From the NCBI GenBank assembly GCA_002269645.1, contig NIVC01000779.1, positions 1 through 64,000 on the forward strand: a stretch of 64,000 nt of DNA, written 5' to 3'. Shown in pieces: positions 11,666-57,283 of this stretch. The notes under the pieces are model-generated. The model did not search any database and was not told the origin of the DNA. It was given only the letters and a program-made list of their open reading frames with translations. The translations under genes were made by a program, and so were the position numbers. The stretch comes from Macrostomum lignano. Lineage: Eukaryota. Each line of letters begins with the position of its first letter. Position 1 is the stretch's first letter.

Positions 11666-11689
11666 CTAAATTTAGATACTAACTAGCAA

Positions 11690-14312: not shown

Positions 14313-14699
14313 TTTTTAAAATGTCTTTTAGTTTTCCTGACGTTGAAAAGCTTTAATTAAAAAAATTATACTCTATGAAAATTCGAACCATCGTCGCTGC
14401 ATTTAGCAGTTCAGTTTCAACACTTTAAAATCCAAGCATAGAGTAAATCACACGAAGCAGTTATGACATAATCAGTTTCTCAGTCAGTCAGTATCAGTTA
14501 ACAATATGGTTACGCAATCTAAATCAAGTCTGGTGCTACGCTTCCACACTGCATTATTAATTTAAGTCGGAGTTACAATTCAGTTATGATGCAATCTATT
14601 TCAGAATCAGAATTCAACCAGTCAGTTTTTTCTCTAGCATTCTTACAATGCATTTCAAGTCGAAAAGTTTGCTTGACCTTTGCAAAAAAGCATGTTTTT

Positions 14700-14829
14700 C
14701 GAATATTTAATGCCTTTAGCATCGAGCAATTTCTTAGCCACGATGCATGTACAGTCACGGGAAAATTTCTGATCGAACAGTGCAAGTTCGAACAAAATCG
14801 GTCCAGCCATTTTTTCTCTAATCGATCAC

Positions 14830-14862
<33 letters not shown>

Positions 14863-14881
14863 CCATTTTTAGTATATTGGA
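14700..14881 (-). mobile_element. 5' end of a non-autonomous Helitron/Helentron-like element with (TATC)n microsatellite
   Basis: Minus strand reads A|TCCAATATACT...(TATC)n...AAAATGGCTGGACCGATTTTGTTCGAAC, the layout of invertebrate non-autonomous rolling-circle elements; 3' CTRR end and hairpin not located. Confidence 0.45.
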
Positions 14882-17254
14882 TAAGCGCAATTTACAACTT
14901 CATACTAAATGCTAAAATAATTTATTACGTCTATTTTACTGATTCAGTGCGTGAAAATAATTTTCAGATTTTCAAAACGATATAAGTGAAACTTTGTTTT
15001 TCTATGTTTCCTAAAACTTAATTTTACTTTAACCATATTTTAAATGCTTTATACTACATTCTAAGAAAATTATTCAAACTTACTACTACTACTACAAAAA
15101 TGAATGCCTACTAAGAAAATGAAAGCCATAAAAATGAATACCATGAAAACTGCAACTGCTAGAGTTAGGCCTAGTTGGCAATGTTGTATTGATAATATCT
15201 TAGGCCTATCCTTAGGCCTATCAGAGCTTCTCAGCAAGCAGTTTTGGCACACCTACTGGCTTAGCCAGATAATTTTTATTTATGGTGACACTTTGCAAAT
15301 AAAATGCATCATTATACTTAATGTACTAATACTAGGTCAAAATGAGGCAAAAATTAACTGGCTGAATTTCAATCAAAATCTAAGTGGAATTGGTTCTACT
15401 TAGGCCTATTATTATATTAGTTCTATTACTAGCCTAGTTCCGCGCGCTTGTATGCCTGCTCAGTGCTCAGGGGAGTTGGCGGAATGGGCAGTAATGCCTC
15501 TCGCTGGTTATGTGTTGATGTTGCTTAAAGTGCACCAGGGTGCACACACCCCCTGCCTCTAATAAAAAATAGAATTGGTGGTACTATAAATTGGGTGAAA
15601 GTTCTAAGATGTATGCAAGGTGATTTTTGATTTGCCTAGCATGTTGTTTCATGAGTGTAATATTAATATATGCATATGCTGCATATTATTATGCATGTTA
15701 TTCTGCAGTCTTCTGCACAATTTTATGTATCTTATTCCGCACATTTTCTGCATATCTACTTTTTAAATATATGAAAAAATATAGTAATAAAAATATGTTT
15801 TAATATATAATTACTAATAGTAGTAATAGGCCTATGTAACATGACAAAGCTACAAATCTATCTATAAATGGCAGTTCTCTTAATTCAACTTAGGCCTACT
15901 AATAACTGCTTTGTTTCTTTGATTTAAATTTGCTTATTTGTGTATTTTGTTTCATTTTTTGCTAATTAATTATCTGATGTAGGTTTTCAAACACTATAGA
16001 GTCTATAGTATGTTTTGTTCAAGTTTTTTAACCATTACATTAGTGTGATCTTTTCATTGTTGATATTGATAAGTAGTCACTTTTCTCAATTTTTTTCTCT
16101 ATCCTCTTTGCAATGTTGCCTCTGCATACAACTCATTTCTAACTCAATTTATAACTTTGCAATTATAGTAGGCCCTACTCTGTTGCCAAATAGCTAAAAT
16201 AATTAGAGCCTAGAGCCAAATGCCAAAGCTAACAGGGAGTATTAAAAATCCCTTGTTATTACTTTTTAGAAAATGTACCATAAGTCTATCATTATCAAAA
16301 GTATTTAGCTTTTTTAAAATGTTTATATAACTTTAACATCAATTTTTAGTATATTGGAGTGTTATATTTGTGACAAAGTGAACAATAATATAGTTATAAA
16401 GTATGCTATTGCTGAGAATGTATAATTTATTTTTATTTAATTGACAGCCATTTTACAATCAAAAGAGGCAGGCTTTTGTAGTATTTAATGTATAATATAA
16501 TGAAGGAATATCAAGAAGGGCCTTTAGTCTAGCATGTAAAAGATTAAGTTTTTGCAGTATAGACTGTAGTGTATGATTAGTCATAGGACAATAATTGTGC
16601 TTCAAAATAATACATTTTTAAGATACAATGAAAACAAACTTAAGTAATGATTAGATTAGCTATGAATAGATCAGATTAATTAATTAAGATTACATTGAAA
16701 AGTCATAAATATCAATGTTACACTTGAATAATCTATTAAGTATTGGACAGACAGAATTTGACACTGTTATACCTGTCTCTCTTCTTGAAAAATGGCAAGC
16801 TCGAATGTAGAAGCAGTGAAGCACCCAATTCTACTTAGATAATATTGATCAAATGTTCAAGTAAGGCTTTAAAAATATGCGAACAGTAAAAAGCACCAAG
16901 TGTAAATGCAAGATTATTATAGTTCAAGTCATGCATTTAGACTATTAATATTTGGTAGAATAAAACATTGATTAGCAAATAATTAATCATTGCAAAATTT
17001 TCAATAAGATTATTGGCTAGTCAAAATCAGCACAAACACAAATTGCCAACTACTATAAAGTGAGAATAATAATTATATAATACATAGATAGGTTGATAAA
17101 AATAATAGGAGAATTCAGCACATGGGAAGACACTACCGATGCAACAGAGTTGAGAAGGCAAAAATGATACAGAATACATCTGCTGCAGAGTGCAGCCTCC
17201 AATAGGTCATTTTTATTTGATCTGAGAAAGGCTTAGAGGTGAACCATTTGAGAG

Positions 17255-17495
17255 CACAAGAAATGCCTGTAGACAAATTGCCTGTCAAGATTTGCCTTCA
17301 GGAGATTTGCTTGCCAAGAGTTGCCTATTAAGATTTGCCCACAGTGCATTTTGCCACAAGTAAATTGCCTGCTGAGTTTTGCCTATAATGCTTTTTCCTA
17401 CATGCGGGCAAAATGCAATGCGGGCAAATCTCAGTAGGAAAAGCTTGGCAGACAAATCTTGATGGATAATTTGTTTGTGGGCAATTCTCATAGAC
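17255..17495. mobile_element. Foldback/MITE-like element with ATTTGCC/GGCAAAT subterminal repeats
   Basis: GTAGACAAATTGCCTGTCAAGATTTG (~17270) is inverted relative to CAAATCTTGATGGATAATTTGTTTG (~17455); a second right-end copy CAAATCTTGATGAGCAATTTGTCTAC lies at ~18065. Confidence 0.5.
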
Positions 17496-19774
17496 TTTAA
17501 CCATTCCATGGCCTAACTTGTTATGTTTGAATTGGGTTTCAATGATTTGTTATATATTTATACTAGCATACTGCATGTTAACAAGTTAGCACAGTAGAAT
17601 CCCATACAATAGAAATAACCCCAATGTTGTACGATGAAAGATGAGTTGGTAGATGATGCAATCAGACTGAGAGTGAGTGACAATTAAATGTGTGATGCAT
17701 AGCATACTTTAAATTTACCCCCAAGCACTGGTGTGCGCCTGCCATAACACCCCCTCCCTACATGGGATTCTGAATCATATGTCAAGTTCAAAAGTTAATT
17801 CAAGCTCAGTTGTTGACTCTTGCCTCAATCTGGATACCGCATTGGTGGCCGACACACATGGTTCAATCTCCATGGCATCGGCTAGGCGTCCAGTGGTTGG
17901 CAGCAGGACTAGCATTCTGCCTGGCTAGTTCAGTTAGGTCCATAGTGGTCCCCAGGCCTTTATCATCGCTGCTTGCAGTGTCACGACCCTCTTGCTCAGT
18001 CAGGATGCAGCGACATAGATGCCAACGCTTGCCATTCTCAAGTAGACAAAAGATCAAGACAAAACAAATCTTGATGAGCAATTTGTCTACAAGCAATTCT
18101 CATGGACCCAAACCATTCCATGGCCTATATGGTCTAGGAGCAAAATGTCTATGGCTGAAACAATGTATGCGTAAAACAACTGGTTAACATAAATAATGAA
18201 TTATATATTATATAAAAATTTAGTTATCTACTAAAATATGCAATTAAAAAGATAGTTTAACTTATTCTCTTATATTTTTCTAATTTAAATCTTATAACAA
18301 TTATCAAATTTAGAAATTCAGAAAAAGAACTTTGAAATATAGATATATCCACATATATAGATATATGTGGAAATTGCAATGAAAGTATATATTCATTTAA
18401 AATATAAAAGTAGCCTTGACTCGTTTATATAATTTGTTTTAATTAACCTGTTCTTTCAACTATATAGCTAACTCTTCTTATAACATAACAACCTCAAATA
18501 TTATGCTTGACTATAGATATGTTTTGTGCATAGTGTAGGAAAGGCCATAGGATTTAGGAAAATGTTTTTTTTTCATTGAAAATTCAATAAACATTTAACC
18601 TAGAGCAAAGCAAAGCAGGGCAAGATGGGGCAAGGATAGGTCAAGGCAGGGCAAAGCAAGGCAGGTCTACTAGGTCCAAGACAGTGGGATATAGGGAATA
18701 GCAAAGTGGTTGACTAGACTGGCATGCTAGAACCAAGCCATGTTGCTTATTTGTTGGCTAATCTTATAATATGGATCTGGATAAAAATGACTAAATGAAT
18801 AAATTGGACCTTAGGGCAAGTCAGAAATTGTAACTAGGCCTTTTTCAAGACATCAAGGTTAATTTTTAGTCTGATTTACAAGGAATTGGGGCATTGGGGC
18901 AGATTTTGAGTTTTGGGACATCAAGGCAGAAACTTTTTTGGTCTTAAATATATTCCAAGGCATGTATGCCATGATCTGGGCTATAGGCCCTATTATAATG
19001 GTTCCTAAAGATTTTCCTAGGTGATTTTGGCAAGAGGTTTTGACAATTGCAACAGGATCTATCAAAGCAGGTTTTATTGATAAAACTTGCAATGGTAACT
19101 CAATGACAATCAATGGCAATGGCAACTAAGGAGTTTTGAAAGTAGGGACTACTTAAAGTAGTTCTGCATTATTGTACTTTTAATCTCCTATTCTCCTTAC
19201 AATCTGCTAATAGCTTTTGTTTATATCCCTGCAGCCTTAGCCTTCTATTCACTAGCCTGCATGTTTAAAAGAGTACTAAATCAGAGCAGGACAACTGGGT
19301 TATGATCTTCAACTGACAAATATCTTAGCTACAGATATTACTACTTGCAAATGAATGATTGAATTATTGCAAAGCAGGATCAGGATCCTGGTGGTCAATT
19401 TTGGGATTTTTGAATCCTATACAATTGTGATCCTGGGTTTAGGATTATTATTAGGGATTTTTTTGTTTATTCCATAAACAGCTCGTAATTTGTTTTTTGT
19501 TTTTTAACTGCCTTTGTTTTTTATAAAAAATACTCAAAATTTGTTCAAAATTTGTTATGTATATATATATTTCACCTGTCTTTTGCATGCTAATCTCAAA
19601 AGTTTATTGTAAATTGGCTCAGCTGGTATCAGAAATCATGTAAACAAATGCCTGCATCACAATCATCATCAGCAGCATACTACTGTTAACTCATAGTAGT
19701 TGAAAGCGCTAATCAAGTGGATTTCTAATTGTCTTCATTAAATTTTATTAGCCATTAGCAGAGTCCAGTCCCAC

Positions 19775-22090: not shown

Positions 22091-23124
22091 ACTCCTTTCA
22101 CAGACACCCTGCCCCAGCGTTGCAGCCGATCAGCTCTCACTGTCACCTTGAACCTGCGCCTGATCATATACTCCTACACTGTCTTCAGTCTGATGTCTAG
22201 CATCTTACCTCTCTCGATAGTCGCAATGACCAACGCGTATACTTCACATTCGAAATTCTGTGGCAGGTATGAGTGGATTTTGACAGCGCTAGTCTTGAAT
22301 CGTGCGAAAATTTTCTCAAATCGAATGCAAGTTTTCTCAACTAGCTATACTAGCGGAATTATTTTCCTCTATATGAGATGGATGCAGCTAGACTTTGAGC
22401 CAATATAGCGGTCAATGATGACTGATATGTGCATTTGTTATATAATTTTTCCTGTGTACATTTTCTAATAAATCTGTGCTTGTATCCCTGTGAGTAGACT
22501 GGTCCAGTTGCGATTTTTGCTGTTTAGGAACAGAAATACAGCCGATTTTCGCCCTAATTACCCTAATCTCCTACTCAAGCTGAATAAAATTTTTATTGCT
22601 CACTTAGAAACCTTGGTAGACAAAAATTTGATGCTACTGTTACATTTGGTAGAGCTGCTTATTTAGCACACGAGAAATTATTACAGATGAAATGCTTTTA
22701 TGGTAGTTATGGTTTAGACAGAGTAGACAGTCTGACTTCTCGCGCCACGACCCCCTGAATCTGATTTGATTGGACGAGAGATGGGGTGGATGAACTGATT
22801 GGTCACTTAGACAGAGAGTATGATGTACATTGATTGCGCGTGGCGAGGGACAGTTGAATTGACCATTAGATATTAGACTAGCAAAATCTAGTGCTCCCCC
22901 TTCTGGGCGCCCAATAATCAAGGGACAAAAATTATTAACGTGATGAATCCTGTTTTCTTTGACACCTAAACAATTCCCCCCCCGTAAGCCTTGACCTCTC
23001 AGCAATTCCTGAGTCAAGTACGAGTAAGCCTTGACTTGCGTCAGAGCGCCCTCCTGAGAATGCTGATTTCACTATACCAGCAACTGAAAGCAATATTGCA
23101 ACACGCCGCCTCATCCAAACGCAG

Positions 23125-23565: not shown

Positions 23566-23962
23566 ACTGACTGACTGACTGACTGACTGACTGACTGACT
23601 GACTGACTGACTGACTGACTGACTGACTGACTGACTGACTGACTGACTGACTGACTGACTGACTGACTGACTGACTGACTGACTGACTGACTGACTGACT
23701 GACTGACTGACTGACTGACTGACTGACTGACTGACTGACTGACTGACTGACTGACTGACTGACTGACTGACTGACTGACTGACTGACTGACTGACTGACT
23801 GACTGACTGACTGACTGACTGACTGACTGACTGACTGACTGACTGACTGACTGACTGACTGACTGACTGACTGACTGACTGACTGACTGACTGACTGACT
23901 GACTGACTGACTGACTGACTGACTGACTGACTGACTGACTGACTGACTGACTGACTGACTGA
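23566..23962. repeat. (GACT)n microsatellite, ~99 units, in SLC35C2 intron 2
   Basis: Perfect tetranucleotide tract starting 12 nt after the donor. Confidence 0.99.
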
Positions 23963-25568: not shown

Positions 25569-26157
25569 CTATATCATTTAAATAAATAACGCGTGCACAA
25601 GGTAATTAATTACCTTTGATTTTTATCCTGCTATATCGTATTCCAATGCGTTCTTGTTATCGAATTGTCAGAATTCTGGCAAATGATGTTATTTAATGTG
25701 CCTTCCATTTGCTTATTACTCGTAATAAGTTAAAATACTGGTTTTTCTTCTTCAATGCTATTTTTAATACAGGTACAAGTAAATTGGATTTTAATTGTTA
25801 GTTATCAACTTTTTCATTAACACTTTGCATGCCTCTTTCTATCCCATAATATATATCGTAATAGATGTATTTGTTCAACTCTTTTAGATTGCATTTTCTA
25901 CTTTAATTACGTATGCTCCACTTTGGCATCGAATAGATTACCTTATTGATTGATGTGTACAATAATACAGTACAGGCGGATTGTGTTGTGTTTATTAATT
26001 AGGGTTAATTTCAATCCAATTTAGTGCTTAGTTTATGAATTGGTTTTGGTTCTGTTTAACATTGTAGTGTGTAGTGCCTGAGTGTCTAGCTGTATATCAA
26101 GGCTTTGTCATTATTTTTTTTGTGAATGGATTCTTATAATTTAGTAAACCACTGTAA

Positions 26158-26512: not shown

Positions 26513-27324
26513 CGTATTATTCAATATCACTCAGTGTAAAAAGATTATAATTGACTCGTTTTTCGGGACTTCCGCATAGCTACTTTTTTTTCTAATGTCA
26601 TTCTCAGATTTCACGGTGGACTAATTTTATAGTTTATAATTTATGCATTACTTGTAAGTCAGTTAAATATATAAATGCACTTGCAAACAGAGCTGATTTA
26701 ATTTCAATTCTGTATATCTATTACGCGCCATGACGTGATCGGATCAGCTTTCAATTTTATTAAATCATTTTCGTAATTATTAACTATTTATATAGGCTAC
26801 TCACAAGTAGTATCATACATGAACCCGCGAGATAATGGTTAAGTACTCGTAGTACGATTCCAGTGCATTACTCGAGACGATTGCTACTAATTAAATTGCT
26901 AGGTCAATGCAGATCAGTTTATTTATAAGTAAAAGGAAAATAAGCGAAATAAATATAGTTATAACAAAATACATAGCAACAGAGAAGAAAGTTTTTGTAG
27001 AGTTTTACATAAAATTAAACGCAAGAAATATAAAAATTAAAAATACGTGTGATAGGATGGAAAATACAAACAAATTACAAGTAAAGTTAATTAAAGATTA
27101 TTCGATAATTCGATAACATGTAAACGAATAATAGCATGACTAAAATGCCTGGCATGAACAATAGCAGTTTCGAAATATTTTAGGAAAAATAGCACCTCAA
27201 ATAATTATACTCCGACTCCGTATGCTTCTAACAAAATGTGCATTGTGGACTTGGCATTCATGGTTATGGTCCTAATAGTCGATTAATATTTCAACTAAAT
27301 TGGGGCAGTTACTTATCTCATAGG

Positions 27325-28379: not shown

Positions 28380-29648
28380 CTGGCCAGGGAGTTGCAATTG
28401 AAGTAAACATTGTCAAGTCACATTCACATTTTTCAGGATGCTTATCATGTACGCAAATCTATATTTTAATAACTTAGTTCATCACAAATGTCACTTGCAG
28501 CAATGCACTTATCTACTCTTCTTCAGCAGCAAAGCCACCAATTTTTTGCATTTATAATAGTAAAATAGAAATATTATTTGTTTTTTCCTGATATTTAAAG
28601 TTGCTAAAGCTGCTAAAATTGTCTTTGCCTTTCCACAATTAGCATCAATGTATGCACTGTTTCAACAACCCCAGGCTGATTTAGATTAGAAATTATTGAA
28701 AACTAAATAAATTTAAGACATAGAAAACTTCCCTTTCTGTGTACAAGTTTGAAATGCTTATAACTATTGGCAGACACATGGCATTGCAATAAAATTTTAT
28801 GCTTCAATAAAACAAATTTGAAAGAGAATATAAATAAAAATTTAACTTATTTAATAAACAATCCTATTGTCCACAATGAATACAGTCCAACAAACTTCAC
28901 AACACCCCTTGTATAAATCAATGCTACTAAAAGATTTTGAATATAAGTAGCTCTCAATTTTCTTACCAATTATTCTATTTACTTTTCAACCAAGTTATAC
29001 ATATGGCATTATGGTATAACTTTATCTTTTAACTTTAATTTGACTATTCTGTTAACTTTATTCATCAAATTGTCTATATAATTTTTTCAACTATTCTATC
29101 AACTTTTCCATTAACTATTTTATAAACTTTTATGTTTACTGAATAGAGAGTGATTTTTGCACAATTCATTTTTGTAACTTTTTGATACATGCTTTGATTG
29201 AGAAATCAAGCATGTTAAAATTTGCAGCCAAACATATTTACAAAAAATAAAAATCATTTTAGTAGAATAAAATAAATTTAAAAACTGAAAATTGATAGTG
29301 TTGGGCACTAGTCAGTTAATAAGTGTTAATATGTTAAGTTATACTTATATATAGATATATGCTTATTTATTTAAAGATAAAAAATATCAAAAAAAATTTT
29401 TATGCAATTGGTTTTAGCATGCCAAAACCAATACAGCCAATTATAAAAATATTATAATAATTCTAATATGCTTAATTTGTTAAATAGATTTAATTATATG
29501 AGAAACACTATTTTTAAAAATATATTTTTAGGATTCTAAGAACTTAAATTAGGTCTAGGCCTACACTACCTAGACTGCTAGACATGAGCCTAAAATATAT
29601 TTTATTTTATTTTATAAAATTAATTTTATTATAATTTATAACACTTAC

Positions 29649-30326: not shown

Positions 30327-31873
30327 AGAAGATTCAATTAATTAAAAAAATTTATTAAAAACAGTCAGTTCTGGTGAAGTTTCTTTGTTGGAACGCTAAA
30401 GTTAAATGGATTACGGGACGATTATCCTCTAAATCTTGTTTGCAAATACAAACGTCGTGTGCGCACACGTGCACGTTCTATGACCAGATTTTCGCGCTTT
30501 AAGATTTTTCAAAAAATTAAATAAGTTTAAGGTTTAACAAATAAAGCAAAGTATTACCAATACTGCAAATGTTAAAGTTTTTTATTTAATTTAATTTTCT
30601 AAGCAAAATCATAAATAAAAATTACTTTTTGCTCCAAGTCACTCACAAAAAGTGTAAAAATGCGAGTTTGCACTAATTCAAGTTGCTCTAAAAAGTTCTA
30701 AAAAATTAAATCTTAAGCAGTTTGTGAAATGAAATGTAGATTTCCTTTTCTTCTAAATTAGTTTTTTATGTTTAGGGCTTAATTCTGTCTCAAAAAGCTG
30801 CCACTAAAGTTTTCACAGGCATGTCTATTGGAAACTTAGTTAGGAAAGTAGTTACTTGTCTAAAATTAATTTCCTTGGATTATCTTCTTAGCAATCTTAG
30901 AATTAGAAATTAGTAATTCTTAGAATTATAGGGTCTGGGTCTGGGTATGAGTCTGAATATAGATCTAAGAGGTCTACAAACTTTGCTAGCCAAGAAAGTT
31001 GCCAGCTGAAGGTTGTTAGCCAAGAAATTTTCCTGCCAGAAGCAGAATGTTGCTAGCCATAAAGTTGCTAATTGAGAAAACTTGTGGGCCAATTGTATAT
31101 ATTCTGCAATAAAGTTCAGAATTGAGAATTTTAGCAGTTATCTAATCGAATAAATGATTTTAAAATTAGCCCCTTAGAAAAAAATATGAAGTATGGGCCT
31201 AGTGTGCAGAATAATGTGTGGAATAACATGCAAAATAACATACATAATGTTACACTCACTAGACTAAGATATACCCTTGTCTTGTTTTTAAATATATATT
31301 CAGTTGCTAAAAGTTAAATAACATAAAGGTTTTTTATAGAGCTTAGTCTAGTAAAAAATGAATCAGTAGGCCTATTCTGCATGTTATTCTAGATCTTATT
31401 TTATACTTTATTCTGCAAATCTACTTTATTACTTTATTTATTATGCAATACTTGGTTTCCTAGCTTTATGTTTGGTACTAAAAACTACTAAACCAGGCTA
31501 CTAAAGTATTGAAAACAAATCCTATCTACCAAATCCCATATACTAAATTGTTTTGTTGGTATCTATGCCAGTTCTCTCAATTCAACTTACTAACTGCTCT
31601 GTTTCTTTGATTTAAATTTGTTTGTTTGTATATTTTATTTCATTTTTGTTAGTTAATTAACGGACATAGGTTTTTCAAATATTATAGTATGTATGATAGT
31701 AATTTTTTAATATTATAGTAAGTTTTTTAGCCAATACATTAGTTTTTGTTTATTTAATGTTAGGAATTATTATTTATATTAATTAAAGCATAAACTTTTT
31801 TCAAGCTCTTGTTATTTCTAATATTGTGCAGTCTCAGTCTTAGCCTCAGCCTCTAGACAATGCCAATAAGTAG

Positions 31874-32219
31874 CTAAGGCACTAATATAAAGTTTTTCAA
31901 CTTTAGTATGATTAGCAAAGTTGTAGCAATCCAATTTTTCGCTTGTAGGTAAGATTGTATCACAACAAGTGCCTTGATAATGTGCAAAACAAGGCTGGTA
32001 TACTTTTTTGTCACTATATTATTTAGATCAATAAACATGCATTTAACTTTGTCATTCCCATGTGGGAGTACAAGTAGGGCTTGCATTATACACATGAGAA
32101 GTGGCCAATTGCCAGCAGAAAAAACTTTGTTCCAGAAGCTTATCACATTTGTATTCTCACTAATAGAGAAATCTATAGCATTACTGGCAATGTCCTACTA
32201 ATGAAGTCTAGTCTCAATC
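31874..32219 (-). pseudogene. hAT transposase pseudogene, C-terminal dimerisation domain (3' part of interrupted gene)
   Basis: ISFWNKVFSAGNWPLLMCIMQALLVLPHGNDKVKCMFIDLNNIVTKKYTSL..HIIKAL matches the hAT pattern FW..W..L..A.L.LPH.NA..ER.FS.LN..TK.R.SL. Confidence 0.85.
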
Positions 32220-32699
32220 CAGGGACTAGGCCTACTCAAATATTGAGATGGGAAACTAGGCAAATCATGGCAAAGTTTTTACGAGGCTGTTTAAATCTAT
32301 GGCCGCGCCAATGCAGCAGTAGCTATTTCAATATTTCAATAAATCTTCAATAAATTTTATATTTTATTATATCTGTGAATTTTAATATTCAGGTGCTTTT
32401 ATGAACTATGTATATTTACTTGAAAGTCATTGGAAAAATAGTTCATAAAACATATAAGATAACATGAAGGACTATTTGTAAGGAGTGAATAGTGAACATG
32501 GAACAGACAAACAATAAAAAGTTAACTCACACAGTGGATATGAGTATTAAAATATGGGAAGTTTGAACATATATATACACAGATAGGAAAATGAACAGAT
32601 GCAAAAAAATATTTAACAGATTTAAGCATTGAATAGTTAGGAATACTCAATAGATGTAAACTTGTCTGTTGCGCAATGTCATGCACTTCTAAGTTTTTT

Positions 32700-35600
32700 G
32701 TCTTTCTCTCTTGAACAGTGACAGATAATGGAGCCACCTTCAATGATCTCTAAACAAGTCTCTTAAAGAATGTGTTTGTTGCTCTTCGTGCCACACCTTA
32801 GATGTTGAAGTCAATGTAATGGAAGAAATTTTCAGCTATAGTTGTAAATAGTGTCTACACTCTCGTTGCACAAATGGGTAAGTGGGCAGTGAAACATGTG
32901 TAGCAAAGAGTTAGAAATGAAAACAGCCACTCTGGGGGTGCCGTAGCTTTCCCTGCAATAGTAACTGAGTAAATTCACTGGCTTCTTCTTTTGTGCTATC
33001 CACAAATTCTCTGTCAATGCCTTCAATTTTCTCCTTGACACAGATACAGCCAAAAAAAGATCCATTTAGTATTCGTATCATCACTACTTCAGCACACCAA
33101 AAATACAATTAGTCGAGGGCTATATACTAATTAGATACAGCAAGAAAAGAAATCTTACTAGCGATGAAATAAAGGGAAGCCTTTTCTGAGAGAGTGATGC
33201 CATCCAGTGTTGCCACCACTGCGATTTTTTATTGCTCAGCGATTTTTTATCGCTCAGCAATAATTTTGTCTATTTTGCTCATTTCCTGCGATTTTTCGTG
33301 AACACCAGTCCTTTCAACTTTTTTTCAAGTACTGTGTTTCATTTTGTGCTCAATTAAAGTGTCATGAATGTCATCAATATAGCGTGAGGCTGTGCAAGCC
33401 TCCGGTTTTGAAGCTCGGCAAAAGGAGATTGAGCATGCTGCGGTTGAGCGAGCACTGAAGAAGGCTGCTGACGAGGCAAGTTACGTCACTTGCAGTTGAG
33501 GTGAGAGAGAAGTCGCCTCTTGGTAGGGTGGCGGTTTCGACTGTTGCTGAGTGTATGTATGCCTGTCTTCCCTTAAGAAAATGCTTGTGTTGTATGACTA
33601 CTTCACTGATTTGGCATAAATGAGAGTTGCATGCAGTTATTGCAAATTGTAGTAGTTTTTTTAGTCAAATAGAAGATGGAATTAGAAATGGAAAGCTAAA
33701 AAAGAAAGTTGTTTTTGCATCCTGGCACCTTTTTTCAATGACAAAAAAGAAATTTGTTCCTGCAATTTTTTTCTTATCCTGCAATAATTTCTTTGGTTGC
33801 TGTAGTGGCAACACTGATACCATCAGTATTTGATGGCCAGCTGTCTAACACTGTTAGCTCCTCTTCAGAAAGTTCCGCGGTGCAACATGGACTCTTATTA
33901 TGGTGATAGTTGTCCAATTCAAGACTTGCAAAAATTTTTCATGCGTCTTAGTTGCACAATCAGTAGGACTTGCTTGACAGATATAAAATAATTGCTACTG
34001 CTCATCTGCCAATAGACTCCAAACTCTCCTTCTAGAGAATCGCTCTGAAAATTCCCTAGTAGAACATAGGAAATATCAGGATCCGAGAGCAGATCTTTGC
34101 AAAAGTCCACCATGCCACGCAAAGAATACAAAAAAGCCAACTTAGTCTCAGCTGTGAGACATCGGTAGCAGGCGTGCCCTTTTCCACACTGTGACTATTC
34201 AATAGACTTGGCAAAATCTTTTAAAAACCTGGTGTTGTTGTCATGAACAGAAAAAATAGGTCTCCTGCTGGGATCATTAAATCAAACATATAGATCTGGA
34301 TTCTTGCAGTTCACTATGTTCCACAACTTTAAAATGGTCTCCACAAAGCTAGCAGTTTCACAATGACTGTCGCACTTAAGTGCAGCTGCCATTTTTTCAT
34401 CAAAAACTTGCAAAGCTAGACTTACTTTTGTTTTTTGAATGCTAGATGGGTAGCAAGCTTTGAAGGTTAGACCAGATCGCTTTACAATATGATTTTCTTT
34501 GCTTTTGTATACTCTGATCAAATTGTTCCACTTGCCGATATAGTCTGTCCATTGCTTGGTACACGGAGTATGAGTATTCCATCTTTTTCTGTTTGCCAAT
34601 TGTTTCTAAGGCATTTCAACAGATGCACTGAGTTGTTTATCATATAGAAAATGGACTCCTGTGAGGGATCTCTGCCAATCCAGGGCTTGATGTGAAGGTT
34701 GTCACAAAAAAAGAGAAAAACACTTTCAATTCATAGGATGGTTATTGCAAACCAATGCAATTATGCAACCGCCTTGATTGTTGATGATGCCTATGCAGTG
34801 ACTTAGCTGATGTCGAAGAAAGTCTGCAGCCAGAAGAAAAATGGGCACTAATTGCATGACAAATGGCTTTCCACCAAAAAGAGGCTTTACCATGATGTCT
34901 AGAACTGTTCGTGCAGCCTGACTAGGATTGTTGCTAGCACATCCCATCAGATGTTTGTACCAGTATTGAATAGAAGGTTGTACATACATTTCATCAAACA
35001 TCAGAACGCAATTTTGCTAAGGACCAAAAATCTTTGAAAAACCAATTGATCGCGTAATTTTGAGTACATCATTCTCCGTGCCCACCTCTCCCCTTCCTGC
35101 AAGTTGATGTCGTAGTGTGCGCTGATGAGGCAATGGAATGAGTGTTCTAATATATGAATAGGTGGAGCTACTGATCAGGTAAAGTAAGGCCAACTTCCAG
35201 AATCTGGATCTATAGTGCTATAGTGTTATATTTGCAAGCAGTCGGTGAGTCTAGTGTTAGCTTTAACTCTTCAAGCAAGAATTTAATAGTTGGATTCTTT
35301 AGCATTACGCTGTCAATGGTGAATATGTTGCTTTTCATGAAATACAAAATCTCATTCTCAACTGAAAACTCAGAGTTGTTGCATCATACAATAATTGCAT
35401 CCAGTTGTGACCAAAACTTCAGCGTGGGTTGAAATCCAAGTAGGTCGCAAACACTAATTGGTATGTGCATTATGTAGGCACAAACAGCAAAATTTGGCGA
35501 AATAAATAATCAAACAAGCATGTTGCCATTGGAGTCCAATGAAAACATATATAAATCCTGCTGAAAAAATGTAACCACTAAGGTGTGGCTTTTGACTATT

Positions 35601-36211
35601 TCAGAGTCCTATACAGAGTCACAGAAACCATTCTATGAAGATATGGTGTCGCTCAGCTGAAACTCCTCTAATTCATCTGCTAAGCCACCTTGTGCGTCAG
35701 AGAGAACACCTCTCGTCTTCACATCTCTATTGCATTCTAAAATGTAAAAACATATATGGTGGGATCTTTGAGAAAGTTTAGATTATATGAACTAAATGCT
35801 AAAGTCTAAAGTACAAATAGGTATTCAAAGTAGTCATACCTTGGTTCTGAACCAGGCAAGACGGAGGAACACCATTGAAAATAGAAGGCGGATCCTTTGG
35901 TGTCTCAAATTGTTGCTTTTCACCATTGTTGTGTCCAGTGGCCAGTGTTTGGCGCAGATTCCCATGTGATCTGTTATGGACTGAAAGGCGGAATAAAGGA
36001 AAAAACACTTGCGAATAAAGAAAAAAATTGCATATAATATATTAGCACAATTTACCTTATAGTAAATAGCACCTACCTCTAGGATTTTTGGCAGAGTCTT
36101 TTTCCATCGCTTTTGCTCAACCGAGTCCTTTGGAAACAGATGGACTTTTGTAGCTAATCGTTCGGACTCGTAATTTGACTTGCAGCCAACAATGCTGCAC
36201 TTTCTTGGCAT
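32700..36211 (-). pseudogene. THAP9/P-element transposase pseudogene (THAP domain split by a 96-nt intron at 36076-35981)
   Basis: MPRKCSIVGCKSNY..VHLFPKD...W...ITDHMGICAKHW..PKDPPSIF (THAP); FDEMYVQP..VLDIMVKPLFGG; HLLKCLRNNW; KVSLALQVFDE; YVLLGNFQSDSLEGEFGVYWQMSSSNYFISV; GKLRHP; ARRATNTFFK. Multiple stops and frameshifts. Confidence 0.92.
33205..33816. mobile_element. 612-bp non-autonomous TIR element (hAT- or P-class) nested in the P transposase
   Basis: Perfect 12-bp TIRs CAGTGTTGCCAC / GTGGCAACACTG; 8-bp TSD ATGCCATC (33197-33204) / ATACCATC (33817-33824); subterminal GCGATTTTTT and GCAATTTTT repeats. Confidence 0.9.
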
Positions 36212-36479
36212 TGATGCCAACAACACAAGCAGAAAAATCGAGCTTGTCCTACGTGTCTGCCAGAAACTTAGCTGCTGTAATATAATGCAAGCATCCTTGC
36301 TAGACTGCAGTGGAAATAATGGTATCACAAGCTTCAAATAATAGAAAATAACCATAGACAACAAAGTATCGCTCAATACAAATTAGCCAGCCAGCCTCGT
36401 CAGCTGCTAACAAACCAGCCTTGTAAAAACTTCGCAATGATTTGCCTAGTTTCCTGTCCCAATGTTTGAGTAGTCCCTG

Positions 36480-38010
36480 TCTCAACCCTTAAGCTATCAA
36501 GCTTAGACTCTAGTATAGATACTAGCAAATTCTTTGCAATAGGGCCTAGTGAGAACCCATTTAACAAATTTGCTATTAAGCTAGTTCACTAGGTTTAGCA
36601 GCTAGCAAGGACGAAGCATTGGACTGGCCAGAGGCAAGTAGTCAAGCAGCTTAGCAGTCCCAGTCTTGAACAAATTCTTCATAGAAGTTAAGCACTTTTT
36701 CTGATCTTTGATTCACAAGAGCTCTGCTATCCCCCCCAACCTTGCCGAACATATTAAATGGATATTTATTTCCCTACTCGCGTGAAGTGACTCAGAATTG
36801 AAAAAGTAGATATACCTGGCATCTCTATCATTCAAACAACAGCTTAAATTGTTCATGAGGCTTAAGAACCTCAGCTAGGAAGTTGAAAAAAAAATGCACC
36901 TTTGGGTCACATATGTTAGTCTTGATGCTCTCAAAGTTTGCTCCTTTTAGTTTCAACTCTAAAACATCCTAGATCAATGGCTACAGCAGTTGCAGGACTC
37001 ACTTAACAATGGGCAACAGTTGCAGCTAGTGAGTCTCAACTGGTTGCAAGAACACTAGCTGATGTATCTTATCAAACTCTCTAGCATTCATGTGCAGTTG
37101 ATCCCTCTTAGTCAGTGCAAATTTGAAGTAACAATAAATATTGCACATTAAAGTCTTTACTTTGATGCCCAAGTCAACAGTATCATATGCATATTTGGTA
37201 GCATTATGTATTTATACATCCACCTATGTCAACAACATTTTGCAGCTGCTCCTAGAGATGCACTATGAGACCAGACTTTGCACTTTGCATTATATTACAG
37301 TTGTTGGTTATCATTCCAACATACCTTTTGACATCTAGAGCACAATTGGTGATTGTATCTAATACCACTATTGCCATGTTCTTAGCAGTCATTGACAACA
37401 AGGCTAGTAGGTCAATGCACAGGATATTGATATTCAAGTGAGAAAATAAGTGCTGCAGTACAATACCTAGATACTTTGTACCCTTATTTGCCTTGTCTTA
37501 TTTGCCTTATTTGCCTTATTGTACCCTTATTGGCAGATAACTTTGCATCTTTTAGCATAACCTCTTTCATGTAGAAAAAGAAAGCATTGGTAATTAAGTA
37601 CACCATCTTGGAATGGTGTGACTACATTGCAGGCGGCACTTTTGAATTAGGACAGATAGTATGCAAATCAGTCAAGAGGTCTTCTTTGGACTTGAAACTT
37701 CTATTTTTTAGAATGGTCCTAATGCAACAACAAATCTCACTAGCCTTAAGCAGTTCACTTTCTGCATTGCCATTACATAGCCTTTCATTTGAGTCTTTGT
37801 CATGCTGCAGAAATGTCCTCATGCTTGGCAGAAATTGAATGACTTTTCAAGTTCATGATTCTGATGCAAAAAAGTCTTGCTTGCACCACATGCATGTAGC
37901 CATTATTTCATTTTTCTGCCATGCCCATTGGCCAATAAGGTATCTGTTTTCATTTTCAACCTTAAGCCAATTTTCATTCCAGTGAATGTTCTTTCTTGGC
38001 ATTGATGTAT
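36480..38010 (-). pseudogene. hAT transposase pseudogene, 5' part (zinc-finger-like N-terminus and catalytic core)
   Basis: HWNENWL...W..KNEIMATCMWCKQDF; ASEICCCIRTILKNRSFKSKEDL..ICPNSKV..M..SKMVYLI; GMITNNCNIMQSAKSG (cf. DNCNVMRG.KSG); FLQPVETH*L (cf. TRWL). The frame resumes after the P-element TSD. Confidence 0.8.
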
Positions 38011-40924: not shown

Positions 40925-41810
40925 CCCGAGTGAGGGGGTCATCTGACGCCTACGCTACTATTTCATTGACAATTGGGAGGTCACCTGACCCCTACGCCAC
41001 CATTTCATTGACAAGAGGGTCACCTGACCCATGGACCACCATTTCATTGACAAAGGGGTCAGCTGACCCCTACACCATCATTTCATTGACAAGAGGGTCA
41101 CCTGACCCCTAGACCATTTCATTGACAATTGGGAGGTCACCTGACCCCTACGCCACCATTTCATTGACAATTGGGAGGTCACCTCACCCCTACGCCACCA
41201 TTTCATTGACAATTGGGAGGTCACCTGACCCCTACGCCACCATTTCATTGACAAGAGGGTCACCTGACCCCTAGACCACCATTTCACTGACAAGAGGGGT
41301 GACCTGACCCCTCACACGATTATTTCATTGACAAAGGGGTCAGCTGGCCCCTACGCCACCATTTCATTGACAAGAGGGTCACCTGACCCATGAACCACCA
41401 TTTCATTGACAAAGGGGTCAGCTGACCCCTACACCATCATTTCATTGACAAGAGGGTCACCTGACCCTTAGACCATTTCATTGACAATTGGGAGGTCACT
41501 TGACCCCTACGCCACCATTTCATTGACAAGAGGGTCACCTGACCCCTAGACCACCATTTCATTGACAAAGGGGTCACCTGACCCCTACACCACCATTTCA
41601 TTGACAAGAGGGTCACCTGACCCCTAGACCACCATTTCACTGACAAGGGGGGTGACCTGACCCCTCACACGATTATTTCATTGACAAAGGGGTCAGCTGG
41701 CCCCTACCACCAATTCATTGACAAGGGGGGTCACCTGACCCCTCACGATTATTTCATTGACAAGAAGTTGACTCCTAGACCAATATTTCATTGACAAGGA
41801 GGTCAGCTGA
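40925..41810. repeat. ~40-46-bp intronic minisatellite with palindromic GGGTCA-NN-TGACCC core
   Basis: About 20 copies of TTTCATTGACAAGAGGGTCACCTGACCCCTACGCCACCA in GT92 intron 1. Confidence 0.95.
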
Positions 41811-41885
41811 ACCCTCTCCCCCTCTGGATCCGCCGTCGCCCGCCCATCCTCAAACCTGTCATCCCCTATTCTGCTTATAATAAAG

Positions 41886-42214: not shown

Positions 42215-43015
42215 AATCCTGACTGAGGGTTAAAGATCCCAATCCTGAAGGGTGAAGGTTAAGGATCCCAATCCTGAATGGTGAAGGTTAAGGATCCCAA
42301 TCCTGAAGGGTGAAGGTTAAGGATCCCAATCCTGAGGTTAAGGATCCCAATCCTGAGGTTAAGGAACCCAATCCTGAGATTTAATGATCCCAATCCTGAG
42401 GGTTAAGGATCCCGATCCTGAAGGTTAAGGATCCCAATTCTGAGGGTTAAGGATCCCAATCCTGAGGGTTAAGGAAGGATCCCAATCCTGATGGTTAAAG
42501 AAGGATCCCAATCCTGAAGGTTAAAATCACGATCCTGAAGGGTGAAAGTTCCAATCCTGAAGCTTAAAGATCCCCATCCGGAGGTTAAGGATCCCCATCC
42601 TAAGTATTAATGATCCCAATCCTGAGGGTTAATGATCCCAATCCTGAGGGTTAATGATCCCAATCCTGAGGGTTAATGATCCCAATCCTGAGGGTTTAGG
42701 ATCCCAATCCTGAGGGTTAATGATCCCAATCCTGAAGGTTTAGGATCCCAATCCTGAAGTTTGAAAATCCCAATCCTGAGGGTTTAAGGATCCCAATCCT
42801 GAGGGTTTAGGATCCCAATCATGAGGGATTAAGGATCCCAATCCTGAGGGTTTAAGGATCCCCATCTTGAGGGTTTAAGGATCCCCATCTTGAGGGTTTA
42901 GGGATCCCCATCTTGAGGGTTTAAGGATCCCCATCTTGAGGGTTTAAGGATCCCCATCTTGAGGGTTAAGGATCCCCATCTTGAGGGTTTAAGGATCCCA
43001 GTTCTAAAGGTTTAC
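42215..43015. repeat. ~21-24-bp intronic minisatellite (AAGGATCCCAATCCTGAGGGTT)
   Basis: About 35 copies in GT92 intron 2. Confidence 0.95.
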
Positions 43016-43100
43016 GGTCCCAGTCCGAATGAATCCTAAAATGCCAATCCCAGTTCAGGATCAACAAATATTTAGAAATCCAGTGTCGTGTTTTTGCCAG

Positions 43101-43449: not shown

Positions 43450-44938
43450 AGAGACTAGCTGAGGGACCATGGTCCATCATGAGAGACTAGCTGTAGGACC
43501 ATGGTCCATCATGAGAGACTAGCTGAGGGACCATCATGAGAGAGTAGCTGAAGGACCATCATGAGAGACTAGCTGAAGGACCATGGTCCATCATGAGAGA
43601 CTAGCTGAAGGACCATGGTCCATCATGAGAGACTAGCTGAAGGACCATGGTCCATCATGAGAGACTAGCTGAAGGACCATGGTCCATCATGAGAGACTAG
43701 CTGAAGGACCATGGTCCATCATGAGAGAGTAGCTGAAGGACCATGGTCCATCATGAGAGACTAGCTGAAGGACCATGGTCCATCATGAGAGACTAGCTGA
43801 AGGACCATGGTCCATCATGAGAGACTAGCTGAAGGACCATGGTCCATCATGAGAGACTAGCTGAAGGACCATGGTCCATCATGAGAGACTAGCTGTAGGA
43901 CCATGGTCCATCATGAGAGACTAGCTGAAGGACCATGGTCCATCATGAGAGACTAGCTGAAGGACCATGGTCCATCATGAGAGACTAGCTGAGGGACCAT
44001 GGTCCATCATGAGAGAGTAGCTGAAGGACCATGGTCCATCATGAGAGACTAGCTGAAGGACCATGGTCCATCATGAGAGACTAGCTGAAGGACCATGGTC
44101 CATCATGAGAGACTAGCTGAAGGACCATGCTCCATCATGAGAGACTAGCTGAAGGACCATGCTCCATCATGAGAGACTAGCTGAAGGACCATGCTCCATC
44201 GTGAGAGACTAGCTGAAGGACCATGCTCCATCATGAGAGACTAGCTGAAGGACCATGCTCCATCATGAGAGACTAGCTGAAGGACCATGCTCCATCATGA
44301 GAGACTAGCTGAAGGACCATGCTCCATCGTGAGAGACTAGCTGAAGGACCATGCTCCATCATGAGAGACTAGCTGAAGGACCATGCTCCATCGTGAGAGA
44401 CTAGCTGAAGGACCATGGTCCATCATGAGAGACTAGCTGAAGGACCATGGTCCATCATGAGAGACTAGCTGAAGGACCATGGTCCATCATGAGAGACTAG
44501 CTGAAGGAACATGGTCCATCATGAGAGACTAGCTGAAGGACCATGCTCCATCATGAGAGACTAGCTGAAGGACCATGCTCCATCATGAGAGACTAGCTGA
44601 AGGACCATGGTCCATCATGAGAGACTAGCTGAAGGACCATGCTCCATCATGAGAGACTAGCTGAAGGACCATGCTCCATCATGAGAGACTAGCTGAAGGA
44701 CCATGCTCCATCATGAGAGACTAGCTGAAGGACCATGCTCCATCGTGAGAGACTAGCTGAAGGACCATGCTCCATCGTGAGAGACTAGCTGAAGGACCAT
44801 GCTCCATCATGAGAGACTAGCTGAAGGACCATGGTCCATCATGAGAGACTAGCTGAAGGACCATGGTCCATCATGAGAGACTAGCTGAAGGACCATGGTC
44901 CATCATGAGAGACTAGCTGAAGGACCATGGTCCATCAT
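43450..44938. repeat. 32-bp intronic satellite with 12-bp palindrome GGACCATGGTCC, ~46 copies
   Basis: Unit CATGAGAGACTAGCTGAAGGACCATGGTCCAT; the variant ACCATGCTCC occurs in blocks. Confidence 0.97.
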
Positions 44939-44983
44939 GAAGCCAGTAATCAGTTTCAGCCCTCATTGGACGCCAAATTGCAG

Positions 44984-45689: not shown

Positions 45690-47090
45690 CCATGTGTATC
45701 TGTCCCCCATGCCCCATATTAATCACCATGCCTAATCCCACACCCCATATGTGTCTCTCCCCCATGCCTAATCCCACATCCCATATGTGTCTCTCCCCAT
45801 GCCTAATCCCACACCCCATATGGCCATATGTGTCTCTCCCCCATGCCTAATCCCACACCCCATATGTGTCTCTCCCCCATGCCTAATCCCACACCCCATA
45901 TGTGTCTCTCCCCATGCCTAATCCCACACCCCATATGTGTCTCTCCCCATGCCTAATCCCACACCCCATATGTGTCTCTCCCCATGCCTAATCCCACACC
46001 CCATATGTGTCTCTCCCCATGCCTAATCCCACACCCCATATGTGTCTCTCCCCATGCCTAATCCCACACCCCATATGTGTCTCTCCCCCATGCCTAATCC
46101 CACACCCCATATGTGTCTCTCCCCCATGCCTAATCCCACACCCCATATGTGTCTCTCCCCCATACCTAATCCCACACCCCATATGCGTCTCTCCCCATGC
46201 CTAATCCCACACCCCATATGTGTCTCTCCCCATGCCTAATCCCACACCCCATATGTGTCTCTCCCCATGCCTAATCCCACACCCCATATGTATCTCTCCC
46301 CCATGCCTAATCCCACACCCCATATGTGTCTCCCCCATGCCTAATCCCACACCCCATATGTGTCTCTCCCCATGCCTAATCCCACACCCCATATGTGTCT
46401 CTCCCCATGCCTAATCCCACACCCCATATGTGTCTTTCCCCCATGCCTAATCCCACACCCCATATGTATCTCTCCCCAATGCCTAATCCCACACCCCATA
46501 TTAATCACCATGCCTAATCCCACACCCCATATGTATCTCTCCCCCATGCCTAATCCCACACCCCATATGTATCTCTCCCCCATGCCTAATCCCACACCCC
46601 ATATGTATCTCTCCCCCATGCCTAATCCCACACCCCATATGTATCTCTCCCCCATGCCTAATCCCACACCCCATATGTATCTCTCCCCCATGCCTAATCC
46701 CACACCCCATATGTATCTCTCCCCCATGCCTAATCCCACACCCCATGTGTATCCCCATCCGCATCCCTAATCCCACACCCTTTATGTTTCCCTATCCCTA
46801 ATCCCACACCCCATATGTTTCCCCACCCCTAATCCCACACCCTATATGTTTCCCCATCCCTAATCCCACACCCCATATGTATCTCTCCCCCATGCCTAAT
46901 CCCACACCCCATATGTATCTCTCCCCCATGCCTAATCCCACACCCCATATGTATCTCTCCCCCATGCCTAATCCCACACCCCATGTGTATCCCCATCCGC
47001 ATCCCTAATCCCACACCCTTTATGTTTCCCTATCCCTAATCCCAGACCCCATATGTTTCCCCATCCCTAATCCCACACCCCACATGTCTC
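45690..47090. repeat. 35-37-bp minisatellite (ATGCCTAATCCCACACCCCATATGTGTCTCTCCCC) 3' of GT92
   Basis: About 38 copies starting ~70 nt after the stop codon. Confidence 0.97.
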
Positions 47091-49395: not shown

Positions 49396-50422
49396 GCAGT
49401 TATTGCGAAACTTACATTAATTTAAAGTCAAGAATCAACTCAATCAGCTAGCGGGAAAGATAACTTGGTGTCGCACAGGTTGTATTTATAATTATATAGA
49501 TAGCATTCAGAAGCTAGGTGTAAATTAGACAGTAGCGCGAATAACAAACAGCAATAAGTAAATAGAAAAAATGTGCTTTTTTATGAGAAGCTAAAAAACA
49601 GGCAAGCAGATAAACAGATAGATTGTATTAGTGAGTTATGAAGAGTCAAGGGCGCCTTAAGTACTCGTAGGACGAGAAACTTCATTTCTTAGAACCGTTT
49701 CTTAGAAAAGTAATTTTGAAGGCATTTATGCTTAATTAAGATGTCTAAAAAAACTATCGCTATTTTGGTGCCGAACCCAACGCCCCAAAAAAACTTTTTT
49801 TCTTAGAAACGAGGCTTTCCATCCTATCTAAGCGAGCTCATAGTTAATGACAGATTGTAGCTGGACACAAGTACATAGTTTGGTATTCATATCTATGCTA
49901 CAATATGAGCGGTGCGATTGCTAAATAATATTTTAAAGGAGTTACATATAAAACATGTGTCTATATGTTTATATATGTTTATCAAAATTGTTAAGCTATA
50001 CATTTAAGACAGAACGGCACAATACAACAAATTGAATTAAGCTTGTTGTCAAAAGCTATTATACGAGATTGTCTGTCAGACAGATTATAGTAGATTTTGG
50101 GGGGATTGCGTTTTACGCTCGTAATCCCGAGTAATCAGAACTTTACTTTAAAGTGACAACGACAATTTTTTATCAAATCAAGTTTTTTTAAATAACGTAT
50201 TCCGCTGTTAGTGCTGTTACTTTTAGTAGTATCGATCGATATGCGCGTCGTGTGTATGCCATAGACGACTGGGCTGACGATAACTCTTCTGAAATAGTGA
50301 GAACATCAGACAAGCTTCTGCAGACTGCAATAATACATCAGACAACCTGTAGACTACAGAAGGCAATACGAGCAGCTTACTCACTGGGGAGCTGGTGTTT
50401 CTGGATCCTTCAATTCGGCCGC

Positions 50423-57037: not shown

Positions 57038-57283
57038 TAGGGGGCGTCGCCATGAATTTATGGTGGGGGGGGACGAAGCCAAGAATTCTGCATAACTAAA
57101 TTCCTATTTTGAGAATATGTGCTCTTAGCGCTCACTTTGGCCGTCTGATGCAAAATTATTGATTTCTACAAGGGGTAACAAGGTGGGGTGGGGGGACAAA
57201 GCATTGGCATGTCCCTCCTATAGCTTCTACTAAGGGACATGCCCCCCCCCTGTCCCCCCGTTGGCCCGGTGGCGACGCCCCTG
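57038..57283. mobile_element. 246-bp hAT-type MITE
   Basis: 14-bp TIRs TAGGGGCGTCGCCA / TGGCGACGCCCCTG; perfect 8-bp TSD GCGCCCAC (57030-57037 and 57284-57291). Confidence 0.88.

Follow-up and report, generated by a model that had tools for sequence, protein, structure and literature searches.

In transposons of the Tc1/mariner superfamily, cleavage of the non-transferred strand takes place a few nucleotides within the element, and the footprint consists of the first or last 2-4 nt of the transposon between two TA dinucleotides (PMC6943129, PMC3878927). The footprints of Sleeping Beauty are TACAGTA and TACTGTA (PMC6943129, PMC3878927), and C. elegans Tc1 and Tc3 have 2-nt overhangs (Plasterk 1991, van Luenen 1994, as cited in PMC3878927). 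Here we compare these systems with a locus of the flatworm Macrostomum lignano, NIVC01000779.1:1-64000 of assembly GCA_002269645.1 (this whole stretch of 64,000 nt is called the window), in which one of the two terminal inverted repeats (TIRs) of a decayed P element contains the additional nucleotides GGCCTA. They turn a TA into the palindrome TAGGCCTA, read as TA+GGCC+TA, and this word recurs in the region. A second word of the same build, TACGAGTA/TACTCGTA (TA+CGAG+TA), was also found. The Tc1-like element Minos of Drosophila hydei is reported, in work by Arca and colleagues from 1997, to leave a 6-bp footprint of TA plus CGAG or CTCG, and we take TACGAGTA/TACTCGTA to be such a Minos-type footprint word. 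We regard the GGCCTA of the left TIR as the excision scar of another, TA-targeting transposon of the Tc1/mariner type, with a probability of about three in four.

The P element and its two ends

The P element extends from 32220 to 36479 with its coding strand on the minus strand, and many stops and frameshifts were seen in its frame map. The left TIR (32220-32292, plus strand) is the 3' end relative to the transposase and contains the scar, while the right TIR (36412-36479, minus strand) has no GGCCTA. The two TIRs are about 65-73 nt long and 87% identical, and the 6-nt GGCCTA is the sole indel between them. The left end reads CAGGGACTA[GGCCTA]CTCAAA (positions 32220-32240 are CAGGGACTAGGCCTACTCAAA, and from 32220 onward the sequence is CAGGGACTAGGCCTACTCAAATATTGAG), whereas the right end, finishing at 36479 and taken as its reverse complement, is CAGGGACTACTCAAACATT (over a longer stretch, CAGGGACTACTCAAACATTGGG). 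The palindrome TAGGCCTA created by this indel lies at 32227-32234. The inserted GGCCTA was placed at 32229-32234, a placement that is ambiguous within 32226-32234.

The element belongs to the P-element superfamily according to its domains, its TIRs and its 8-bp target site duplication (TSD). A THAP domain (PF05485) was detected at the N-terminus of the transposase with 29.1 bits against a cut-off of 23.9. The scores of PF21787 (TNP-like RNaseH_N, 24.0 bits) and PF21788 (GTP-binding insertion, 23.9 bits) were slightly below the cut-offs, as obtained with a stitched, frameshifted pseudo-protein. Protein relatives with E-values down to 7.5e-80 were annotated with PF21787/PF21788, and none of them was more than 49% identical. 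The left TSD (32212-32219) reads TCTCAATC and the right one (36480-36487) reads TCTCAACC. The duplication is perfect when the right flank of the window is compared with the left flank of another copy of the locus (L004, described below), which still has TCTCAACC at the same place. The preliminary description had reported a P element with GGCCTA in its left end, absent from the right TIR and forming a palindrome; the sequence is exactly as described, and the THAP, TNP-like RNaseH_N and GTP-binding matches bear out the assignment.

No further copies of the P-element TIR were present elsewhere in the window, and no family consensus was built through the protein search because the closest relative was 49% identical. 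Orthologous copies of the locus were used for polarity in place of such a consensus.

Direction and age of the change

Three copies of the locus, all from the one assembly, were compared: the window (A), L001 on NIVC01000955.1 (B) and L004 on NIVC01000516.1 (C). The third copy was reached through a 90%-cluster member of the SLC35C2-like protein, whose exon pair at 19.8-23.6 kb of the window is 100% identical to M. lignano BOX15_Mlig019756g1. The copies are mosaically related. A is nearest to C at 7-20.5 kb, with 99.1-99.9% identity, and nearest to B at 27.9-34 kb, with 99.66% identity over 27.9-33.5 kb. The divergence of C from A is about 2.5-5% over 27.7-32.4 kb, and C is about 95% identical at the P-element site. 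Such a mosaic implies recombination or gene conversion among the copies, or an assembly of mixed haplotypes or homeologues; the three copies are either homeologues of a partly duplicated genome or uncollapsed haplotypes.

The same P element is present at the same site in both other copies. B has ...GTCTCAATC/CAGGGACTACTCAAATATTGAG at the boundary, and its TIR reads CAGGGACTACTCAAAT at L001:23660. C has ...GTCTCAACC/CAGGGACTACTCAAATATTGAG (L004:25553), its TIR reads CAGGGACTACTCAAAT at L004:25562, and it keeps the perfect TSD TCTCAACC left of the element. The left TIRs of B and C and the right TIR of the window thus all have CAGGGACTACTCAAA and no GGCCTA. Here C is the outgroup to the sister copies A and B, with the right TIR of A as a fourth witness. 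The change from TA to TAGGCCTA at 32227 is therefore derived; it was gained after the P insertion, in the window copy only. Since the site sits in the block in which A and B are 99.66% identical, the insertion is recent.

The opposite direction, in which the ancestral TIR had TAGGCCTA and the right TIR lost GGCCTA by a deletion between the CTA...CTA direct repeats, can be imagined because ACTAGGCCTACTC offers a 3-nt CTA microhomology and ACTAGGC is found again in the second sub-repeat of the TIR. It would need three identical independent deletions, including those in the orthologous left TIRs of B and C, the former being 99.66% identical around the site, where one insertion in A suffices. We find this deletion scarcely credible. 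The proposal of the preliminary description that GGCCTA arrived after the P element had inserted is thereby upheld, and the ancestral TIR with TAGGCCTA that it had named as grounds for abandoning it was found in neither of the other copies nor in the right TIR.

Two further differences among the copies were observed at the P element. A segment of about 440 bp directly left of it (31772-32210) is present in the window and in B and absent from C, where GGAATTATTA is directly joined to the TSD GTCTCAACC. An insertion of 900 bp within the P element (L001:24919-25818, corresponding to about 33475 of the window) is private to B. Within it lies the neighbouring flank in inverted orientation (GGCGACTTCTCTCTCACCTCAACTGCAAG...), and its appearance is that of a fold-back or repair-type insertion more than of a simple transposon.

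Recurrence of the GGCC word and its empty sites

The window contains 15 copies of TAGGCCTA against 1.03 expected, and the maximum in 100 dinucleotide-preserving shuffles was 4. Markov models of order 1-3 gave expectations of about 0.7-1.0. The word was also found at a second, unrelated locus of M. lignano, for which three copies (L003, L005 and L006) were compared; L003 alone has two sites against 0.09 expected. In a full scan of all TA-N4-TA words in the window and L003, TAGGCCTA was the top word (17 against 0.81 expected). Six loci were fetched, and about 150 kb of non-redundant M. lignano sequence was examined. A literature search for TAGGCCTA returned only primers and oligonucleotides.

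All 15 sites of the window are located between 10.3 and 32.2 kb. Their flanks are AT-rich and have no mutual similarity, the best flank identity being 13/24, and the nearest other TAGGCCTA is more than 850 bp away from the TIR site. Eight of the sites are in common with B and 13 with C. The sites at 15166-15173, 15213-15220 and 15827-15834 are found in all three copies, as is that at 10292-10299, which together with 10286-10291 forms TAGGCTTAGGCCTA and resembles a nested double scar. B has 1-nt variants at 10368-10375 (TAGGCATA), 10765-10772 (TAAGCCTA) and 11329-11336 (TACGCCTA), and TAGGCCTT in place of 15401-15408. At 10656-10663, the corresponding segment of B (L001:3963-3994) has TAGGCC-(18 nt)-TAGGCCTA, representing two scars or one that includes filler. 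The site at 31367-31374 is also in B, and C has AAGGCCTA there. Another nested arrangement, TAGGTCTAGGCCTA at 29550-29563, has TAGGCCTA at 29556 after a copy with one mismatch and occurs in B and C as well. The two 14-mers TAGGCTTAGGCCTA and TAGGTCTAGGCCTA are each one mismatch from TAGGCCTAGGCCTA, as would follow from a later insertion into the TA that an older scar had provided.

Several of the sites are polymorphic. At 11168-11175 and 15201-15208 the word is present in A and C, and B is empty (GATT-TA-TTTT and ATCT-TA-TCC, respectively). At 15891-15898 it lies in one copy of a dispersed repeat of about 150 bp (CAACT-TA-GGCC-TA-CTAA), whose paralogue has a plain TA at 31588-31589 (CAACT-TA-CTAAC). 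In the second locus, L003 (at 18407) and L005 (at 22830) have CATG-TAGGCCTA-GG and L006 has CATG-TA-GG. Together with 32227, every filled and empty pair differs by exactly TA versus TA+GGCC+TA, so that the target TA is doubled around the inserted bases at each of these places.

The indels between the copies were in agreement with this pattern. Eleven 6-bp indels were detected between A and B; eight were tandem or near-tandem duplications and the other three were all GGCCTA at TA. Between A and C, one of the three 6-bp indels was a GGCCTA-at-TA event and the rest were tandem or near-tandem duplications. Replication slippage or tandem duplication was ruled out as the source of the scars, since TA alone is duplicated and GGCC is not templated by the neighbouring sequence.

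Two other readings bear on these counts. The GGCCTA might be an assembly or polishing artefact in NIVC01000779.1, as the 32227 site is private to one contig and exact look-ups of open reading frames (ORFs) in read assemblies gave no match. Errors of long reads are mostly 1-nt indels, not specific 6-nt insertions that form a palindrome. Other sites of the window are shared with L001 or L004 in the numbers given above, and the same event was seen at the second locus in two of three contigs, which makes an artefact very improbable. The other possibility is that TAGGCCTA is a functional palindromic motif under selection, for instance a protein-binding site, with its copy in the TIR being incidental. 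Twelve perfect copies upstream of the SLC35C2-like gene, joined over the initial 1.2 kb by nine copies with one mismatch, would suit such a motif. Selection leaves the exact 6-nt insertion with its TA duplication, in a dead transposon and at a second locus, as well as the parallel CGAG word, without explanation, and any function would be secondary to the insertion process. We therefore consider it improbable that a functional motif accounts for the sites.

A second word and variant scars

Among the TA-N4-TA words that are not explained by simple repeats, TACGAGTA/TACTCGTA ranked next after TAGGCCTA, with 11 copies against 0.59 expected in the window and L003. Its 6-bp insertion at TA is polymorphic as well, being present at L003:6523 and L003:19320, where L005 has a plain TA. 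In the window, the scan detected TACGAGTA at 2234-2241, 23019-23026 and 61338-61345, and TACTCGTA at 2921-2928 and 25717-25724. Two more copies of TACTCGTA, at 26844-26851 and 49662-49669, are to be read with caution. The former shares 19 nt of context with 49657-49675 and may be a repeat end, not a scar, and the latter adjoins a 159-bp inverted-repeat unit (49668-49826).

Imperfect versions of both words were identified. On the minus strand at 19479-19485, a 7-nt insertion absent from C, TTA[CGAGCTG]TTTA, is a non-canonical scar of the CGAG type, and L005 has an irregular word of this type, TACGAGCGTA, as TC[TACGAGCG]TACGG. These variants (CGAGCG and CGAGCTG) look like two imperfectly joined element ends, which fits CGAG/CTCG overhangs. 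For the GGCC type, TAGGCCGGCATA at 10541-10552 may be a non-canonical scar of the form GGCC+GGC, and TAGGCCCCTA at 11132-11141 lies in a complex indel relative to B. The 5-nt variant TAGGCCCTA occurs at 16169-16177 and 18984-18992 and, on the opposite strand, as TAGGGCCTA at 36540-36548; it has three copies against 0.29 expected. At L003:18349 a 5-nt insertion, GGCCT, was found in AATA[GGCCT]TTGG, and an insertion of TAGAGGCC is private to B. TAGGCCCTA, the GGCCT insertion and TAGAGGCC, like the nested 14-mers TAGGCTTAGGCCTA and TAGGTCTAGGCCTA, would be the products expected of error-prone joining.

A further arrangement in the window, at 50062-50123, reads TA-CGAG-(50 nt)-CTCG-TA, and its ends cease to match as inverted repeats after the four terminal bases. 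Two close scars, or a single CGAG-type scar that includes filler DNA, would account for it, and it is analogous to L001:3963-3994.

Comparison with known excision systems

In the mechanism that we favor, a TA-targeting element would insert at the TA of ...GGGAC-TA-CTCAAA... and double it. At excision, the transposase would cleave the non-transferred strand at a point a few bases into the element; the flanks would keep 3' overhangs formed by its terminal bases (GG, GGC or GGCC), and end joining would close the break as TA-GGCC-TA. The same process may have occurred at many TA sites of the M. lignano genome, and a second family with CGAG...CTCG ends would have left the TACGAGTA/TACTCGTA scars. 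The product would be uniform because 4-nt GGCC overhangs are self-complementary and could be closed by simple annealing and ligation. A 3-nt GGC overhang pairing via GC, or the retention of 2+2 nt, would give the same word TAGGCCTA. A 4-nt stagger appears to be favored by the CGAG type and by the GGCCGGC variant.

The likeness to Sleeping Beauty includes the doubled TA that would bracket the terminal bases of a departed element, the staggered 3' overhangs with end joining that are proposed here, and the identical scar at every place (PMC6943129, PMC3878927). The difference is that four nucleotides (GGCC), not three, stand between the TAs and that the core is self-complementary. Moreover, unlike the experimental products of Sleeping Beauty, the sites of M. 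lignano are fixed or segregating germline scars from a donor that is so far only proposed. The resemblance to Minos lies in the net 6-bp insertion, which would be composed of four terminal nucleotides and one TA, but the scar in the TIR carries GGCC, not CGAG, and no Minos-like transposase or TIR was present in the sequences examined. Tc1 and Tc3 share the TA target and the retained 3' overhangs, and 2+2-nt retention (TA-GG plus CC-TA) would also yield TAGGCCTA. However, their ends are CA...TG, and a 2-nt model cannot yield TACGAGTA or the GGCCGGC variant.

Short donor-site scars likewise remain after cut-and-paste excision of hAT and P elements. These scars keep 8-bp TSDs, with flank-derived palindromic nucleotides from hairpins in hAT or longer TIR remnants in P, and their added bases vary by site and are not TA-specific, whereas those in M. 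lignano are constant. A hairpin (P-nucleotide) origin of the hAT/Transib kind was rejected since the added bases are constant and are not palindromic copies of the flank. PIF/Harbinger elements, with a TTA/TAA duplication and GGCC-type ends, were also rejected because the filled sites read YTA-GGCC-TAY, not TTA-GGCC-TTA.

The preliminary description had suggested either an excision footprint of a TA-targeting element or a recurrent insertion process acting in end joining or fold-back. The footprint is the best fit of these two. The over-representation of GGCCTA at TA, for which it had proposed a test, is borne out by the 15 copies against 1.03 in the window and by the polymorphic sites between the copies, and its view that simple slippage does not explain the insertion agrees with the doubling of TA alone and the missing local template for GGCC. 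Its remark that no mechanism had been described was mistaken, as the Tc1/mariner footprint of TA, terminal 2-4 nt and TA is a described one (PMC6943129, PMC3878927).

Search for a donor

No element of the form TA/GG(CC)...(GG)CC/TA or TA/CGAG...CTCG/TA with convincing inverted ends was found in the approximately 150 kb. The search of the window and five loci yielded nothing but the internal match of the P element, pairs of scars and a single 159-bp unit whose similarity did not exceed chance level. This unit, TA/GGACGAG...CCATCC/TA at 49668-49826, has inverted ends matching at 20/28 positions and is a weak candidate for a TA-flanked miniature element; by our own estimate its match quality is about that expected by chance over all TAGG/CCTA pairs. 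Another weak candidate, in this case for a GGCC-ended donor family, is a fold-back repeat at 17229-17513 that has ...CCATGGCC/TA at its right end; the end of a second copy lies at 18064-18127, with ...CCATGGCC/TA at 18125. Element, footprint and empty alleles at one and the same locus were not seen among the six loci fetched.

No Tc1/mariner, hAT or PIF domains were detected in a Pfam scan of the 91 ORF segments of the window of at least 75 amino acids. Exact-protein look-ups of the window ORFs gave no recorded match. A mariner-like element was identified in the second locus at L005:12370-13849. It is 1.48 kb long, flanked by TA, with 30-bp TIRs CTYCGGCTGTCCGGAAAGTCGTGAGAATG, and its ORF matches DDE_3 (30.7 bits against a cut-off of 28.6) and contains WDNARPH...YSPDFNLCD. 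It is missing from L003 and L006, which read TG, not TA, at the site. The Tc1/mariner superfamily has thus been recently mobile in the M. lignano genome. This particular element is not the donor, since its ends are CTYC, not GGCC.

The large copy-specific insertions were also considered as donors and rejected. They comprised a Helitron-like insertion, a retroposon-like one with a 7-8-bp TSD, the fold-back insertion, a long-TIR element ending AATGTGAGGG, two elements with 5-bp TSDs and the mariner-like element with CTYC ends.

Excision or a process without a donor

The main competitor to an excised Tc1/mariner-type element is a stereotyped repair at TA that needs no donor, either a TA-specific break with addition of GGCC or template switching from other TAGGCCTA sites. 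To our knowledge, no such process of GGCC addition at TA has been described. New copies stand beside older ones (15201 and 15213, and the nested 14-mers), which would suit local templating, but no TAGGCCTA lies closer than 850 bp to the TIR site. The unrelated CGAG word shows the same TA-N4-TA behavior, with variants like two joined element ends, and the footprint mechanism predicts the anatomy of the scars exactly (PMC6943129).

Several observations weigh against excision, among them the missing donor and the absence of Tc1/mariner domains from the scanned ORFs of the window. In addition, half-sites are not enriched, with ten TAGGCC lacking a following TA where about 12 are expected for all TAGGCC. 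The scars are also strongly clustered: 12 of the 15 sites, at 10.2-11.4 kb and 15.1-15.9 kb, fall within about 2.3 kb after a Helitron-like insertion private to the window is discounted, and this would require a hotspot or local hopping, both hypothetical here. Polarity was established for the TIR site only, the other polymorphic sites being without an outgroup, and the three copies come from a single assembly and were read at assembly level. Because no donor was found, half-sites are not enriched and the sites are clustered, some weight has to be given to a donor-independent process, which we nevertheless consider unlikely. A broader version, in which TAGGCCTA and TACGAGTA arise from a donor-less insertion process at TA or from elements that excise so efficiently that scars are their main trace, seems doubtful to about the same degree. 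If it were true, 6-bp TA-N4-TA scars would be a dominant class of short germline indels, arising in hotspots such as the 12-site cluster.

Other mobile and repeated sequences

The Helitron-like insertion is located at 11683-14881. It is 3.2 kb long and present in the window copy only, B and C being contiguous there, and the flanks in C are 99.5-99.9% identical. On the minus strand it starts with TC and ends with CTAG, with a hairpin, CCCCAACGGGGGG, placed 11 nt before the 3' end, and it is inserted between host A and T. It is Helitron-like and very recent. Inside it are a tract similar to (CCCTAA)n and 23-bp repeats arrayed over 1.5 kb.

Two elements of 3.6-3.8 kb, L005:4734-8358 and L005:18184-21968, are private to L005, with the TSDs CTGTG and GATAG, respectively, and TIRs of the form GGGT(N5)CTCAAA. 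At the L005:4734 site, L003 and L006 have CTGTG-TAA-CTGTG, resembling an excision footprint of that 5-bp-TSD family.

Frameshifted ORFs at 462-1530 of the window contain the motif ...EAGHGKGAADGVGAAVKR... and have no Pfam match; their nearest relatives are 40-44% identical (JGI metagenome proteins), and they probably represent an uncharacterised transposon-derived gene. The part of the window from 40 to 64 kb is extremely rich in minisatellites of 16-41 bp (among them the arrays 40933-41815, 42223-43026, 43450-44940, 45726-47087, 53668-54815 and 57282-58151). Two long tetranucleotide arrays separated by 35 kb, (ACTG)n at 23566-23962 and (AGTC)n at 58895-59288, make up an inverted pair of 394 nt.

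Significance

A 6-nt palindromic insertion that seemed to have no mechanism is most readily understood as a textbook type of transposon excision scar, of recent origin and confined to a single copy of a locus present in triplicate. The mechanism of such scars is already known, and it is mildly unusual that two stereotyped TA-N4-TA scars are so dense and so polymorphic in M. lignano. In this flatworm, a model of regeneration, they occur at about 20 times the chance frequency, and all other 6-bp indels between the locus copies are tandem or near-tandem duplications. Where such 8-mers are enriched, mutation and not a regulatory function can be the source, which calls for caution in the reading of similar words. 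The scars are easy markers by which differences between duplicated genome segments may be polarised, and they suggest that two or more TA-specific transposon families of high mobility, with the ends GGCC and CGAG, are or were active in this genome.

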